A DNA stretch of 64,000 nucleotides from Oopsacas minuta (taxonomy: Eukaryota > Animalia > Porifera), in assembly GCA_024704765.1 (NCBI GenBank), contig JAKMXF010000298.1, forward strand, positions 310,001-374,000, written 5' to 3'. This document shows, in pieces, positions 3,001 through 10,408 of this stretch. A model generated the notes under the pieces. It saw only the letters and a list, made by a program, of their open reading frames with translations, was not told the origin of the DNA and made no database searches. Position numbers and translations under genes: made by a program. Each line of letters opens with the position of its first letter. Position 1 is the first letter of the stretch.

Positions 3001-5356
3001 TTATGCGTTGCAATAGCATTATTTTGTGGAGGAGTAAGCGAGTCTCTATACAGAAAATCTAATAACGAAGTGTTCATATTTATCATCATAGAGTACCAGC
3101 TGTATATGTATTAAGATGATGTTATCATGGGTCACATTCAAAATGATTCTAATTCGCAGTAGTGAGGATTTTGAAGTCATATATTTTTGTATATGACTGA
3201 TTTGTATAAGTTCAGATACAGACAACTCTAGTTACATCAAAATACCTGCTGATATCGAAGTCTTAAATTGTATAAATATGACCCCAAAGTAACATAAATT
3301 CCACCGGTTATATCCAAGTTATTTATTACCGCCGTCCCCTGAGCTTCGATATGACAGGAGTTGACTGTATATAATATATACCTGTCAATTGCCTTGTCAA
3401 ATGAACCAGTTCTTGACCTTACGTCATCATTAGGCTGCTGCAGTTCAGAGTTAATCTCTTTTCTCAATGTATTATGTTCGTTCACGCTAGCAACGCTATC
3501 GGAATGCATAAAAGGAGGAGGATCAGGAGCACTGCGACGTATTCTAGGCGGAGAAGATGATAGTGACTTAGTGTTAGCTTCCGCGTATGGGAATATACTA
3601 TCATTAAACGGGGGACTAGTAATAGACATACAGAGATGACCTGCTAGATTACTAGAGGTAGATGGCGTATGTTTGAGTGGAATTGAGGGTGTTTGAAATG
3701 CAGGGTGAATAAGAGACCTCTCTCCCGTGAAGAAGGCGTGATAATCTCTGCATAGACACCAGAAATCTTTACAAATACGACCGTTTACAAGTTTAAACTC
3801 TAAATCCGTCTTTTTACCAGTTCTATGATGACGTGCTACAATTTTATATTTATTTCTTCGTGAAGATAATCGTATTATATTTCTCCAGGGGAAAACTTCA
3901 TGTAATATTCTCTTCTCGAATAAGCACACACCTATATGTGATACTGCTATTTGGATGGGGTAGCTAACTCTTCTGGCTGAACAGCAATTCATACCGTAGT
4001 ACTCCAATGCTAGAAAAGGTATAATATCGGTTCAAATGTTACGTAACGAAAGTTACCTGACCCCAAGATTGTCACATTCTGCATAATGTGGCCTTGGTAG
4101 CGTTACATAACGTTTGAACGACCGCTTACAGTGTTTCATTCAGACATTTTGGTGAGAGGGGGAAAACCAGAGTTTTGGCTATGAAGGATGGGTACTCATC
4201 ATCTAAAAGGGACACCTAGGATCCAAGGGGGACAAAATGCCCCCTTAAATCAACCCTGCCTTAACTACAGTCAACTCCCATCGGTTATAGGACATATATC
4301 GAACACGGATATATCGAAGTACCCATTTATATAGAAGTCTGAAATTATATAAGATAGTTCAAAATAGTCAAAGTAACATAATTTCACCGATTAACCGTTA
4401 TATCGTAATTTTCGCAAAAAAGTCCTAAGAATACTTTTAGCTAATATTTACATAAATTACACTTACTTGTTACGATAGAAAGAAATTCCTTTTCGGCTTG
4501 TCCAGCAGGCATACCGTATTTAGATTGATGTACAGCTGCTACAAAGCTAGAGAATGTATAGTCAGTGTCTTGAGTGAATCTAAACTGATGTACATAACCA
4601 TCTGTCATACGATAAGGATCATAGTCACCTAATTCAGCTTGTAGAGCTAATGCACACAGTTGCTTTAGAGTACTATCAGAACAAGGTAGTCTCCTATTGA
4701 GAGGAATATACGTGATAAGAGGGATTTGTGAATAATCGTTTTGTTCTCGATTCGCTGGAAGAAAAGTTACAAAAAATAGCTGAAAAACGATGGACAAAAT
4801 CTAAGTGTATTTGTAACTAAAGGAATTTGCTAAGCACATACATATAGATTCCACTCCCATTAAATCTAACTACGCGGGAACTGACGTATATATCTTAGCG
4901 TATACCCACATTTCGCACCATGATAATTCGTGGATTATCTCACATTCACTTTGAAAGTATACATTTCCTTTCATCATGGTGCGAATTGTCAGTATTCCCT
5001 CACTTAGTATATAGATCCAATTTGAGCTGTAGATAAAACAGATAACGTGTATATTCATGGTGACATCTATCAGGAGCTGGCGGGTAATACTTTACACGGA
5101 AATATAAATGTATACGTGTTTGTTTTGAAAAATTTGATAATTGTTTCTTCAAACTCTTCTCAGCTAATAACCATTTGAATTGAGTTTCTTGTTGATATTG
5201 TAAACCGAAATAAATATTCTCCTTCAATTCGATCTGATCGAATATATGTTGTAATAGATAATGCCCGGAGCAAGTTCGATCAACTTCATAGCACATTTCA
5301 GCTCCATCTAGAAACTGTACTTGACATAGCATGCCTGTTGGAAGAGGAGATTCCAT
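1..5356 (-). CDS. PTPN3/4: FERM-PDZ-protein tyrosine phosphatase (PTPN3/PTPN4/PTP-MEG type), multi-exon, 3' part runs off the left edge
   Basis: FERM exons 5356-5004 ([20 protein letters not shown]), 4693-4467 ([12 protein letters not shown]) and 4009-3382 ([16 protein letters not shown]). PDZ exon around 1490-1305 (GRYGFNIQG). PTP motifs [15 protein letters not shown] and DYINASHV (770-510), [17 protein letters not shown] (451-328) and KCYRYWP (48-1). GT-AG boundaries join in phase where checked. Confidence 0.92.
1667..1820. mobile_element. Degenerate MITE, family A (pogo/Tigger-like TIR CAGTCAACTCCCGTTATATCGAA)
   Basis: Starts CATTCACCTCCCGTTATATGAAG and ends CGATATTACGAGAATTGACTG. The interior matches the copy at 61947-62100. 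Lies in a PTP intron. Confidence 0.7.
3219..3367. mobile_element. MITE family A, TA-flanked
   Basis: TA-CAGACAACTCTAGTTAC ... CGATATGACAGGAGTTGACTG-TA, intronic in the PTP gene. Confidence 0.8.
4268..4420. mobile_element. MITE family A, left end intact, right end decayed
   Basis: TA-CAGTCAACTCC...TATATCGAACACGGATATATCGAAG, plus the shared interior motif GTCAAAGTAACATA. Confidence 0.65.
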
Positions 5357-5523: not shown

Positions 5524-6228
5524 TCATAACATACAGGCTTTGAGAAATCGGTTAGTTTTCAATTCTGATGAGCTCTTTATTTTCGACAGGGCTACTTCTA
5601 ATGAAACGGGGTTGAAGAGTTGGGTAGGCTCTTTGAATATAGAACATTGATCAAATATAATTTCATCAATAGCAACCTTTGTTTGTATTGCTATTCTAAT
5701 TGCAGGGATTTGTACAGGGAAACCGCATACTATAAGTGTATTTATTTGTAATGCATTATCTGCTATGAGATTGTGTTTATGTATTTGTCGTAGTGCTGCC
5801 CGTATGGATAAGAATATATTCATTCTATTTTTATTAGAAGGATCTGCTCTATGTGTAGGGGTGTAGATAAAGTATCGATTTGTAGGGAATGAAAGGAGGA
5901 GAGATTCGCCCACTAACAATTCTCCATTATATTTATCTTGTATGCTTTTGGTTAGGCTTTGTTCAAGGTAATCTCCGTACAGCTGAATAGCCTTTGAATG
6001 TAGTTCATTTTCTGTTGATAAGAACCCAAAGCTATTGCCAGGTAGGATAAGAGCTGAGTTTGGAGATAATTCAAGTTTATTTGTCTCTATTTGTTGGTAT
6101 CTTATTAATTCTGAGTATCTAGAGTGAGAGAAAACTTCTTCACAATTTTGCAATAGTTCTGGGTTATCTGAATGGAAGTGTAGGGAGTTCAAACAAGAGG
6201 ATTTATCAGTTTCTGTTTCAGTAGCCAT
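5524..6228 (-). CDS. Macrodomain-like protein (Appr-1''-p processing family), intronless, ligand loops degenerate
   Basis: ALILPGNSFGFL, IQDKYNGELLVGE, YFIYTPTHR and NIFLSIRAAL resemble family motifs AIVSPANSFGFMDGG, YxGELxVG, YLIxAPTMR and NxYLAFRAAL. Confidence 0.72.
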   Translation of the reverse strand: MATETETDKSSCLNSLHFHSDNPELLQNCEEVFSHSRYSELIRYQQIETNKLELSPNSALILPGNSFGFLSTENELHSKAIQLYGDYLEQSLTKSIQDKYNGELLVGESLLLSFPTNRYFIYTPTHRADPSNKNRMNIFLSIRAALRQIHKHNLIADNALQINTLIVCGFPVQIPAIRIAIQTKVAIDEIIFDQCSIFKEPTQLFNPVSLEVALSKIKSSSELKTNRFLKACML

Positions 6229-6333: not shown

Positions 6334-6489
6334 CAGTCATATCCCGTTATATCGAACACGGATAATTTACTTATATCGCGGTCTGATATTATACAAAAAT
6401 GGTCTCATACCGTCAAAGTAACATATTTTATCGGTAATTGAAGTAATTATAATTACCCATTGAGTTTCGATATAACAGGAAGTTGACTG
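6334..6489. mobile_element. MITE family A
   Basis: CAGTCATATCCCGTTATATCGAAC ... TTCGATATAACAGGAAGTTGACTG-TA. Confidence 0.8.
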
Positions 6490-7175: not shown

Positions 7176-9512
7176 TCATGTAGGTGCAAATGAGAAACTT
7201 GCTGGGACAGCTGATAGCTGACAGTAGCTTTTCTTTCCACGAGTAACATCCTCAGGAGGTGAAGTTAGGCGAGCGAGGGTGACTCCATTGAAGTTTCCAT
7301 TCTTATTGAAATGGAAATGGTGACAACAATCTTTGCTGAGGAAAATAAGTCTATCTTCTGTATTAGCTATTACTGGCATATAGCGTGTACGAAAATGTCT
7401 TACTTTATGTGGGATGAGCAGAACCGTATCTCCAGTTTTGAAGTTATCAACTGATACGAATCCAGAAAGGGATTCTTGTGCATCTATATCAGAGAGAGAA
7501 GATGAACTAATTCCATCACTGAGTGGAAATGAGGGCGTAGGAGTACGTGCACTAGGGTATGGCATTAGGAAGTTCTGTGGTGTAGCAAGGTTAACGATTA
7601 GCTCTCTTGAATCACGGAGAAGTCTATGTATTTGTAATGTGTACTTTGAGCGGATATCAAGTAGCAGGTGGGAGAAATTAGCTATTATAGTCTGTAGCTG
7701 TAGTGAAGACGTGTATACTGCCTGCAAAGATAGTGCGTATTTTGCTGAACGCTGAGCGCGCTCAGTTCTTAGCTTTTCAAGGTTATTTTCTAACAAATGA
7801 ATTTGCGAATCTTTCGGTTTAGATTCGGGGCTGCTAGAGAGGACGCTGATGCAAGCTTCCAAATCATTTAAACTGGATAATGGCGAGTGCGAAAACTTTG
7901 AAGATGACAAATGTGAAATTAGCTCAATTGCTTTATGTTGTTGGAAGGAAACATCTGCAGTTAACTTAGTCTGTATTTCTGACAAATATTTCGTGATTTC
8001 CTGCAGTTTCTCTTGCCCAGGAATATTCGTAGCAAGTACAAAATCAAAGTTGAGGCTATCAAGTTCAAGCGTTGTGTTTATCGTATCTATTTTAGCATCT
8101 GCAGCCGCTTTCTCTAATGATAACTGTGAATCTATATCTTGGTAATGAGCAATGAACTGATTGCAGTAAGAGAAAAGAATCATGACAGCAGTATTATGGT
8201 ATTCCTCGCTTTTTTGCAATATGTTATATGTCGTGATACAATTACGAGCTAATTCACCTTTACTCATTGAACCAGTCCCTGATTCAAGTTTTAATAAAGA
8301 TGCAGGCACGGAGAGTGGTGAGAAGCGTGGTGTAGCAAATATAGAAGTATCGCAGAGTACAGCCATGTCAAGGGAAGATTGGATTGATTGGAAATGAGGG
8401 ATCATACTTTTGTTTTTGATGTTGATGCTAACAATTCCATCTTTTGATGGATACAATATTAGTAGATCTTCTTGTCGCACAGAAAAGAGTTGACTAGCTT
8501 TACAAGCAATTTCGTTCCAGGTCATAACTTCATCTTTCGCTACACGTGCTACTTCTTCAGTGTGTAGGAAGAAAAGGGACATTTTGGGGATTTCGAAGTC
8601 TTCAGCTTGTTCTACGAGTGCATCAATACCGATACGTTTCAGAGGATCAACTTTCAAAAGTTGTATTATTAAAACTTCAATTTGCTGAAGAAAAGATTGA
8701 GAGAAGAAATGACTAATTTTGTTGGGAAGTTTACGAATGTAGTTAACTTTATCGAATTTAATTTCAAATGCAAGAGCATCTTCCTTCTTAGAAATAAGCC
8801 CATGAATTCTCTTCACATCAGCAGCAAATCCGTATTCCCCAACAATAGCAAAATACAGTAGAGCTCCGATACTCCAAAGATCTACCAAATCATTGTATGT
8901 TCTTCCTGGCTCTATGAGGCATTGCAAAGCTTCTGGGGCCATAAAGGCTGGACTACCTGCGAGTGATACAAGAGGCATGCTATGATCCCAGTAACGAGCA
9001 TACCCAAAATCGGCTAGCTTAATGTCGAACGTTTTCTTTTTAGGGTCAATCCATTTTATAAGCACGTTCTGAGGTTTTATATCTCTATGCACGATATCGT
9101 GTTGATGCAGGAAAGACACACCCTGTGCAACTTGTGAAAGGAAACGAATCAACATTTGCTCTGAAGGATCATTTGCTTTTCTGTATACTGCAAAATCGTC
9201 ATCACAAAGTTCCATCACAAGGATAATCTCAGCTCGAGTTTCCTCTACAGCGAATAGCTTCACTATATAAGCACAAGTCCCAACATTTTGCAAAATATCA
9301 ATTTCTCTTCCCAGAATACGCTGGCTTTTCTCGTTCTTTAGTATGCGACTTCTGGCAATACATTTTACAGCAACTGCGTATTTCTCTCTAACGTGGTGAC
9401 CCTTGTAAACATTCGCGAATGTTCCTGAACCTATTCTATCACCGGAATTTTCCGTCCACTTAAAATCTCCTGAAAAAGGGGAAATACCTTCAATATTAGT
9501 GATACCAGTCAT
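7176..9512 (-). CDS. Ser/Thr kinase (ULK1/TBK1-IKK-like) with ubiquitin-like domain, helical scaffold and C-terminal Atg11/FIP200 Claw-like domain, intronless, 778 aa
   Basis: GSGTFANVYKG, VAVKCI, HRDIKPQNVL, DFGYARY, GSPAFMAPE and DLWSIG give an intact kinase. A ULD-like segment follows (MSLFFLHTEEVARV...DLLILY), then a long helical region and the C-terminal VSVDNFKTGDTVLLI...LIFLS...SYCQLSAV. Confidence 0.88.
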   Translation of the reverse strand: MTGITNIEGISPFSGDFKWTENSGDRIGSGTFANVYKGHHVREKYAVAVKCIARSRILKNEKSQRILGREIDILQNVGTCAYIVKLFAVEETRAEIILVMELCDDDFAVYRKANDPSEQMLIRFLSQVAQGVSFLHQHDIVHRDIKPQNVLIKWIDPKKKTFDIKLADFGYARYWDHSMPLVSLAGSPAFMAPEALQCLIEPGRTYNDLVDLWSIGALLYFAIVGEYGFAADVKRIHGLISKKEDALAFEIKFDKVNYIRKLPNKISHFFSQSFLQQIEVLIIQLLKVDPLKRIGIDALVEQAEDFEIPKMSLFFLHTEEVARVAKDEVMTWNEIACKASQLFSVRQEDLLILYPSKDGIVSINIKNKSMIPHFQSIQSSLDMAVLCDTSIFATPRFSPLSVPASLLKLESGTGSMSKGELARNCITTYNILQKSEEYHNTAVMILFSYCNQFIAHYQDIDSQLSLEKAAADAKIDTINTTLELDSLNFDFVLATNIPGQEKLQEITKYLSEIQTKLTADVSFQQHKAIELISHLSSSKFSHSPLSSLNDLEACISVLSSSPESKPKDSQIHLLENNLEKLRTERAQRSAKYALSLQAVYTSSLQLQTIIANFSHLLLDIRSKYTLQIHRLLRDSRELIVNLATPQNFLMPYPSARTPTPSFPLSDGISSSSLSDIDAQESLSGFVSVDNFKTGDTVLLIPHKVRHFRTRYMPVIANTEDRLIFLSKDCCHHFHFNKNGNFNGVTLARLTSPPEDVTRGKKSYCQLSAVPASFSFAPT

Positions 9513-10004
9513 TCAGTAGTTCAATTAATTTTTTAGTTAATTTAAAATACAAATATTTTTCTTTTATACTTGGAACTTAAAAATTTTTATGATTAATCAT
9601 GGCATTAATCAAAACTGCAACGCATTACATTCATCATTTCCAAAAATAACATGTAATCAAAGTCTAGGTAAACCAAAATAAACCTACAGTGTAGCTTATC
9701 CTTTATCTGACCTCAGTTGATGAAGAGATTTTCCGTAAAATGGATTGTAGTATATTACTTTCTATGAAAATATATTGAAAATGCTTTATTATCCACTTTT
9801 TCATAAAATACTCACGAAGAATGAATTTCAGATAAAGATACGTCTGCAGTGTACATGAATGCAATTTCATAATTAATAAACAGAAGACAATAAATCAAAA
9901 CAACACACTTAATAAAAAGATATTTAAAACACCATATATGTGTGGAATGAAACCCAATCACGATGTAAACTGAATGGCTGCAATTATGACGCCCGTCCGT
10001 TGGT

Positions 10005-10028
10005 GTTCGTTTTAATGAGGTTCCACTG
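10005..10028. mobile_element. Isolated pogo/Tigger-type TIR (family B right end)
   Basis: GTTCGTTTTAATGAGGTTCCACTG-TA is the reverse complement of the CAGTGGAACCTCGTTAATACGAAC end at 20729, with small mismatches. Confidence 0.55.
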
Positions 10029-10408
10029 TAACTAAGTATAGAAACGAATCGGTTTCATGTACCAACGTAATTTCTAGCTACCATAAAGATTGTAAACTGT
10101 CACGTATATTGTACAAAGGAAAGACAGTTGTCTTTGTACGATTGTATGCATGAGTAGAATCAAAGCAACTGAATAGGAAAACTTAATATTAACATGGTTG
10201 TAATAGTACTAGCATAATATGCAGGTTTATATGTAGTGGTGTCACAGGCTATCATATTTCTGTGGTGAATGTTTAATGTAGTTCTATGCCAAAGAATCAG
10301 TGGTTTAGCAATTTGTAGAATATTCATAAATGCTGATAAGCCCAATTGAACGTTTTGTTTCGTATAAAATAATAAGCCTATCTCGTAAAGACTATAATCT
10401 ACAAAGAA

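Follow-up and report, generated by a model that had tools for sequence, protein, structure and literature searches.

We analysed a 64,000-nucleotide stretch of the genome of the glass sponge Oopsacas minuta (contig JAKMXF010000298.1 of assembly GCA_024704765.1, positions 310,001 to 374,000 of the forward strand; hereafter the window), the JAKMXF contigs belonging to the O. minuta genome project (PMC10280926). Positions 7176-9512 of the minus strand hold a single intron-free open reading frame (ORF) of 778 codons and a stop (protein P0001), with an in-frame stop adjoining its ATG on the upstream side. From the amino-terminus the encoded protein consists of a kinase domain that is ULK-like in sequence and predicted to be active (residues 24-302, window 8607-9443), a ubiquitin-like domain (ULD; residues ~309-400, 8313-8588), a scaffold domain of three long helices (residues ~404-644, 7581-8303), a highly conserved Ser/Pro-rich linker predicted to be disordered (residues 645-684, 7461-7580) and a Claw, the carboxy-terminal domain of Atg11 proteins (residues 685-778, 7179-7460), all on the minus strand. 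The first-pass annotation of this DNA, made from the letters alone, had marked 7176-7463 (residues 684-778 and the stop codon) as Claw-like and had placed kinase, ULD, helical scaffold and Claw-like domain in one unbroken ORF. Our analysis bears this out, and the ORF is conserved and apparently transcribed. In our view the best explanation, to which we give a probability of about 60%, is a real, expressed gene of a sponge family in which a ULK/Atg1-like serine/threonine kinase is fused to a compact scaffold of the Atg11/FIP200 type, made up of the ULD, the three-helix scaffold, the Ser-rich linker and the Claw, and which would work by the mechanism proposed below.

The ORF is preserved in related genomes. 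Five syntenic orthologues, presumably from other hexactinellids, were found in other ENA assemblies, encoding proteins of 777-779 residues with 72-84% overall identity and giving, with O. minuta, six intact ORFs. The ratio of non-synonymous to synonymous substitution rates (dN/dS), from comparisons whose synonymous sites are saturated or close to it, was 0.01-0.08 for the kinase, 0.07-0.12 for the ULD, 0.05-0.11 for the scaffold, 0.01-0.08 for the linker and 0.035-0.10 for the Claw. Every domain is under purifying selection. All five polymorphisms observed within the ORF across public sequencing runs were synonymous. One sample is represented by four runs, three of which gave a flat, DNA-like depth. 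In the fourth, X4, the word depth was 660-1200 over 7210-9501, compared with 25 in the downstream intergenic region, and reached thousands over neighbouring genes; no splice joints were observed within the ORF. The gene is therefore probably transcribed as one unspliced unit, reading X4 as an RNA-like run, a type that is only guessed, and contig depth as a crude measure. Intact ORFs in six species, dN/dS values below 0.12 and the RNA-like coverage together rule out a pseudogene or a gene-model artefact, the latter as the first-pass annotation had already argued.

The kinase domain was identified by Pfam Pkinase over residues 24-302 (E 7e-51). Its closest sequences in the PDB are ULK2 (E 9e-38, 133 bits), ULK1 (~4e-36), ULK3 (1e-28) and AMPK (6e-24), and neither TBK1 nor IKK is among the best 60 PDB kinase matches (<80 bits). 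Likewise, a BLAST search with the kinase scored ULK-type proteins at 112-139 bits compared with 98-107 bits for TBK1 and IKK-epsilon. The sponge kinase shares with ULK1, ULK2 and Atg1 the GxGxFA glycine loop and the DFGxARY...GSPxxMAPE activation segment. The catalytic motifs are complete (K50, E70, D144 of HRD, N149, D168 of DFG and APE at 192-194) and, like the activation-loop residue S183, they are invariant across the aligned hexactinellid and demosponge members. In the PDB alignment the position of S183 is occupied by an aspartate in the ULK2 chain and by the activation-loop threonine in the ULK1 chain, which we take to be D173 of human ULK2 and T180 of human ULK1. As all catalytic motifs are present and invariant, the kinase should be active. 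A Pfam scan to E 10 found no ATG1_tMIT or tandem MIT (EAT) domain (PF12063, PF21127), and where ULK1, ULK2 and Atg1 carry this domain at the carboxy-terminus the second half of the sponge protein is ULD, scaffold and Claw; in a tree of kinase domains the family also forms its own clade. Lacking MIT domains, the protein falls outside the ULK proteins by domain content, and because these domains are absent canonical ATG13 binding is unlikely.

Behind the kinase, an AlphaFold2 (AF2) model of the whole protein was reasonable over residues 310-644, with a predicted local distance difference test score (pLDDT) of 75-85, and placed a beta-grasp domain ahead of three long helices. The beta-grasp fold is built from strands at 310-315, 320-325, 350-356, 359-363 and 383-388 and helices at 332-343 and 365-380, and the scaffold from helices at 418-488, 497-537 and 568-642. 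Structural alignment matched residues ~309-400 to the ULDs of IKK, TBK1 and FIP200. At the sequence level the family profile gave weak matches to ubiquitin and ISG15 (E 0.5-2), and one relative, P0016, matched Ubiquitin_2 at E 0.002. Using VIA-align over residues ~302-651 we obtained Z-scores of 20.0 for IKK2, 19.9 for IKK1, 18.0 for the FIP200 amino-terminal domain (NTD; 8soi_A) and 17.4 for TBK1, the next matches being unrelated helical proteins at Z ~12. The FIP200 NTD is itself known to resemble the ULD and scaffold of TBK1 (PMC7337493). In the AlphaFold DB the amino-termini of Atg11 proteins (their residues ~2-400) align with residues 310-642 of the query, and in four of these proteins (A0A060T3H7, A0A0D2GZG1, A0A044TFX9 and A0A6G0WZC7) the carboxy-terminus is in turn matched by our Claw model. 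Language-model features ranked ATG17-like clusters first both for the carboxy-terminus of the protein and for the post-kinase part of its Geodia relative, with scores of 0.42-0.79 that lie below the reliable range and serve as leads only. On these models the ULD-scaffold module is genuine. The scaffold as modelled fits IKK/TBK1 and FIP200/Atg11 about equally and is not assignable to the one over the other; the Atg11/FIP200 reading is favoured because the order of the modules equals that of whole Atg11 proteins, a family defined by its Ubl, Atg17-like and Atg11 domains (Pan et al., PMC7511232).

A short motif at the end of the ULD also drew our attention. Residues 394-397 (window 8322-8333, minus strand) read NPRF in four of the five orthologues, TPRF in O. 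minuta and TARI in P0006. The NPRF-type site is reminiscent of NPIF, which Shi et al. described for both TBK1 and FIP200 at the interface between ULD and scaffold, and it is not kept in the demosponge relatives.

The structural matches raise the question of whether the protein is instead a divergent member of the IKK/TBK1 kinases that acts in innate-immune or NF-kB-type signalling, with a carboxy-terminal beta domain in place of the adaptor-binding tail and a link to autophagy no closer than that of TBK1. TBK1 does act in selective autophagy, reaching FIP200 through the FIP200-interacting region (FIR) motifs of NAP1 and SINTBAD. The layout of kinase, ULD and scaffold is indeed the same, the domain lengths are nearly those of TBK1, and IKK2, IKK1 and TBK1 match the fold at Z 17-20, with the two IKKs at the top. 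In a Foldseek search with the whole model IKK-beta was ranked first (E 6e-9, within an IKK/TBK1 range of 6e-9 to 1e-4), and NCBI labels the relative from Amphimedon as 'IKK-beta-like'. However, the kinase sequence is nearer to ULK1/2 (~128-133 bits) and, as described above, to ULK-type proteins in BLAST, and the family did not join TBK1/IKK-epsilon in the kinase tree, in which IKK-alpha and IKK-beta were not included. Nor did the post-kinase region yield a significant sequence match to the TBK1 ULD or CCD1: hhalign against a TBK1/IKK-epsilon post-kinase profile gave a weak match of 13.6% probability, and Pfam TBK1_ULD and TBK1_CCD1 were not detected. The FIP200 NTD is nearly as close in structure, and only Atg11/FIP200 proteins have a Claw as well, where TBK1 and the IKKs end in an adaptor-binding helical tail or a NEMO-binding domain. 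The protein thus has the IKK/TBK1 layout and lacks the corresponding sequence signature, and we regard assignment to IKK/TBK1 as rather unlikely.

Evidence for the Claw came from both sequence profiles and structure. The first-pass annotation had aligned the last ~95 residues with the FIP200 (RB1CC1) Claw by eye, and HMMER gave the identical register. A profile of 11 sponge sequences pairs 'vsvdnyktGdivlliP', 'vifLdkecys', 'vilarl' and 'fyrvna' with 'IAIRDFQVGDLVLIIL', 'LYFLHSESLP', 'WVLGKV' and 'FYRVKA' of RB1CC1. Searched with this carboxy-terminal profile to E 10, the whole of the PDB returned only eight sequences, all of them RB1CC1 Claws aligned over the full domain (E 0.05-0.15). Extending the profile by the linker brought 6gma_A (RB1CC1) to E 0.0018, and RB1CC1 was the sole natural protein reached in the PDB by the broader sponge profiles. 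Narrower queries against the PDB were less sensitive: phmmer with the last 114 residues of the O. minuta protein gave chance matches only and a profile of the six hexactinellid sequences gave no match. In Pfam, ATG11 (PF10377) was the only or the top match for the last 100-124 residues (E 0.11-0.17, 12-13 bits), and it also appeared in three of the 11 family members, where E was 0.013 at best.

An AF2 model of residues 655-778 gave a clearer answer. The first 24 ranks of a Foldseek search of the PDB all went to FIP200 Claw structures (E 8e-4 to 1e-2, TM-score by target 0.5-0.69, root mean square deviation (rmsd) ~3 Å), followed by generic oligonucleotide/oligosaccharide-binding (OB) folds at E > 0.06. 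VIA-align, which is independent of Foldseek, placed the RB1CC1 Claw first among 48,161 chains with Z 8.2 and an rmsd of 2.4 Å over 76 residues, and in the AlphaFold DB the top cluster matches were Atg11 carboxy-terminal domains. A sceptic might propose that the domain is a small beta barrel of the generic OB-like kind, which resembles the Claw by convergence or through an accident of modelling. The model is of modest quality (pLDDT 61.5, from a six-sequence alignment), the Pfam ATG11 match is sub-threshold, OB and S1 folds appear further down every match list and a structure search of the ESM Atlas gave only assorted small beta proteins. Against this, the drop after the 24 Claw matches is sharp, the independent aligner separates the Claw from its next match by Z 8.2 to 4.4, the sequence profiles reach no natural protein in the PDB but RB1CC1, and the domain sits at the carboxy-terminus behind a ULD and scaffold, as in Atg11. 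We consider the generic barrel very improbable. The Claw assignment of residues 685-778 therefore stands on the fold and on the RB1CC1 profile matches, and falls short in that the Pfam ATG11 threshold is not reached; it is borderline yet consistent at the sequence level, clear at the fold level and beyond chance.

The linker that leads into the Claw is unusual in being both disordered and constrained. Residues 645-684 have pLDDT values below 50, which gives ~40 predicted disordered residues between scaffold and Claw, and with the low dN/dS reported above they include invariant stretches such as PTPS, LSDG and SSSSLSD. The linker also aligns with the Ser-rich stretch preceding the human Claw in 6gma_A. 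The core FIR motif consists of an acidic residue or phosphoserine, a bulky hydrophobic residue, any two residues and then Leu, Ile or Val (PMC7946963). An invariant SSSS-L-S-D-[I/L] at residues 669-676 (window 7485-7508, minus strand; SSSS-L-S-D-I in O. minuta) fits this core, a lead that rests on pattern and invariance. The pattern is so degenerate that it occurs 22 times in the whole protein, and it is conservation alone that makes the linker copy notable. Within one chain, or between the two chains of a dimer, the segment might serve the Claw as a self-ligand; it is also a possible target of autophosphorylation.

A search with the kinase domain revealed that the gene belongs to a wider sponge family. 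The relatives are 854-998 residues long, share 40-45% identity over the kinase domain, and include the 'IKK-beta-like' protein of Amphimedon queenslandica, an 'uncharacterized' protein of Dysidea avara, a cluster containing the 'ATG1' of Geodia barretti and several transcript-like contigs. The demosponge relatives align with the O. minuta protein across the ULD, the scaffold and the carboxy-terminal domain, and the Dysidea protein has a sub-threshold ATG11 match of its own. A maximum-likelihood tree, built from 44 kinase domains that did not include IKK-alpha, IKK-beta, ULK3 or ULK4, unites the hexactinellid and demosponge members in one clade (support 98/88), apart from the ULK/Atg1 and the TBK1/IKK-epsilon clades, with the deep nodes not resolved. 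The automatic labels 'IKK-beta-like' and 'ATG1' thus mislabel, and conceal, a distinct sponge family. The first-pass annotation had known of no described protein with this architecture. Our literature search likewise turned up no account of a kinase fused to a Claw or to Atg11; as proteins, on the other hand, members of a sponge-wide family were already in the databases under those two names. The modules are known, and it is their combination that we found in no paper.

Some features vary within the family. The demosponge members P0015-P0018, P0020 and P0133 have a coiled-coil segment of 30-40 residues and longer low-complexity linkers between scaffold and Claw. The FYR motif, the counterpart of human F1582-R1584, is kept in the demosponge members and lost in the hexactinellid proteins. 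At least two demosponge subfamilies can be distinguished in the kinase tree.

How the fusion arose is a separate question. The family could be what survives of an ancient kinase-Atg11 fusion that later, by loss of the Claw, gave rise to the IKK/TBK1 kinases, and so not a recent, sponge-specific fusion. The FIP200-NTD-like module joined to the kinase still bears its Claw here, the family dates back at least to the divergence of hexactinellids and demosponges, and a tree that leaves the relations among the sponge family, ULK/Atg1 and TBK1 open at its deep nodes allows for such a history. That same tree, however, lends no support to TBK1/IKK as the sister group of the family, an independent fusion is equally simple, and no member was found outside sponges in searches that word filters and length windows restricted. 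We consider this origin quite improbable. Of these searches, a post-kinase profile run against an index of 5.8 billion proteins returned the Amphimedon protein and one fragment only, a word-filtered result that is uninformative on taxonomic range.

Taken together, the domain architecture is established at the level of the predicted fold, with borderline support from sequence. A number of observations weigh against the fusion of a ULK-like kinase to an Atg11/FIP200-type scaffold. The AF2 models were built on a six-sequence alignment and carry modest confidence, with pLDDT below 50 for the kinase domain in the whole-protein model and 61.5 for the Claw model. Pfam found no ATG17_like (PF04108), TBK1_ULD (PF18396) or TBK1_CCD1 (PF18394) domain in the protein, the ATG11 score is under the gathering cutoff of 22 bits, and an exhaustive phmmer search with residues 311-778 against 1.8 billion representatives returned only the protein's own 50%-identity cluster. 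In the kinase tree the family falls outside the ULK/Atg1 clade. Also absent is the long coiled coil in which FIP200 and Atg11 carry their binding sites for Atg1 and NDP52. Finally, the human FIR pocket, formed by Y1564, K1569, R1573, F1574 and R1584, appears poorly matched in a comparison that rests on sequence alignment: the loop carrying K1569, R1573 and F1574 is ~9 residues shorter here, in the beta4/beta5 region, and R1584 is aligned with a glutamine.

The pocket residues deserve further comment, as K1569 and R1573 are the basic residues with which human FIP200 binds FIR phosphates (PMC7946963). Yeast Atg11 is without K1569 and R1573 as well (PMC7946963), so their loss is no argument against a Claw. 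It is possible that an invariant RGKK at residues 758-761, close to the pocket region, supplies the basic patch instead. Since the FIR-pocket residues are not conserved, the ligand of the sponge Claw may differ from that of human FIP200.

By analogy with its separate counterparts, the fusion protein is probably a kinase that cargo receptors recruit and dimerisation activates; recruitment by receptors with FIR motifs and a role in xenophagy, both raised in the first-pass annotation, are inferences. The helical scaffold would dimerise the protein, like that of TBK1, IKK and the FIP200 NTD, and the Claw would dock the dimer on short motifs of acidic residues or phosphoserine and hydrophobic residues in cargo receptors or other clustered partners. 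Local concentration or contact within the dimer would then cause the kinase to autophosphorylate S183 in its activation loop, and the active kinase would phosphorylate adjacent autophagy or receptor proteins. In such a protein the Atg1-Atg11 or ULK1-FIP200 contact would be hard-wired in one chain, without the ATG13-binding MIT domains. A precedent exists in Schizosaccharomyces pombe, where Atg1 is activated through Atg11-mediated dimerisation and an artificial dimeriser, a leucine zipper, can substitute for Atg11 (PMC7511232). In the sponge protein too an Atg11-type scaffold would pair the kinase, and the Atg1-leucine-zipper fusion shows that hard-wired dimerisation can take the place of a separate scaffold. 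Unlike the engineered protein, which is artificial and has no Claw, the sponge fusion is natural and retains the module that binds cargo receptors.

Compared with FIP200/RB1CC1 and Atg11, the post-kinase part of the sponge protein has the ULD, the Atg17-like or TBK1-like scaffold and the Claw in equal order, with a Ser-rich stretch ahead of the Claw. It differs in having a kinase at the amino-terminus and in its size, the scaffold part being ~470 residues where the known members have 1,000-1,600. The long coiled coil, which in FIP200 and Atg11 binds Atg1/ULK, ATG13 and NDP52, is absent from the hexactinellid form, and the demosponge members have only a short one. Further differences are the unreached Pfam thresholds and the non-conserved basic residues of the human FIR pocket. 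In the predicted models the hallmarks of Atg11/FIP200 are thus present at fold level, the long coiled coil excepted, with a ULD and scaffold that fit IKK and TBK1 equally well.

In the systems studied so far ULK1/Atg1, FIP200/Atg11 and TBK1 are separate proteins, and how the binding of a cargo receptor to the Claw switches the kinase on is still debated. At ~780 residues the sponge protein offers a compact model for asking whether Claw-mediated clustering suffices for kinase activation. It is also relevant to the idea, put forward by Shi et al. (2020), of TBK1 as a kinase with a FIP200-NTD-like module attached, as the sponge family has this layout plus the Claw. A bolder proposal, which we think doubtful, is that sponges keep an autophagy-initiation module in one polypeptide, a ULK-like kinase with a miniature FIP200 and its Claw, that may be a relic of an ancestral fusion behind TBK1 and IKK. 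If true, it would provide direct evolutionary evidence for the proposed kinship of the ULK1-FIP200 complex and TBK1, and a minimal natural system that couples cargo-receptor binding to kinase activation in a single chain.

The neighbourhood of the gene is conserved as well. Septin, kinase, an ORF of ~234 residues and a FERM-PDZ phosphatase follow in this order in O. minuta and at L001 and L005, the orthologous loci with enough flanking sequence, and as the septin is also visible at L006-L008 it is found at every orthologous locus. In the window the septin lies upstream of the kinase gene, beyond 10400, and the multi-exon FERM-PDZ tyrosine phosphatase downstream, at 3237-5356 on the minus strand. 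Between this phosphatase and the kinase gene, the 234-residue ORF (5524-6228, minus strand) matches no Pfam family (best E 0.1) and has very high coverage in X4. A gene call of 235 residues lies directly downstream of the kinase gene in L001 and L005, and one of 233 residues further downstream in L006. The ORF appears to be a conserved, expressed gene.

Two minor observations concern sequences outside the family. The top-scoring kinase-domain matches outside sponges were P0007-P0014, proteins of 950-1,230 residues on ENA contigs of ~3.7-4 kb, which combine kinase matches with PF03382 (DUF285) repeats and reach 250-280 bits at only ~30% identity, which suggests several kinase-like stretches per protein. 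In the intergenic flanks of the kinase gene, at window 6334-6483 and 9990-10030, pieces of 21-35 bases recur in several other long contigs of the sample. The contigs diverge there, with loose ends at 6356, 6460, 6480, 9996 and 10030, and the pieces are probably small dispersed repeats.

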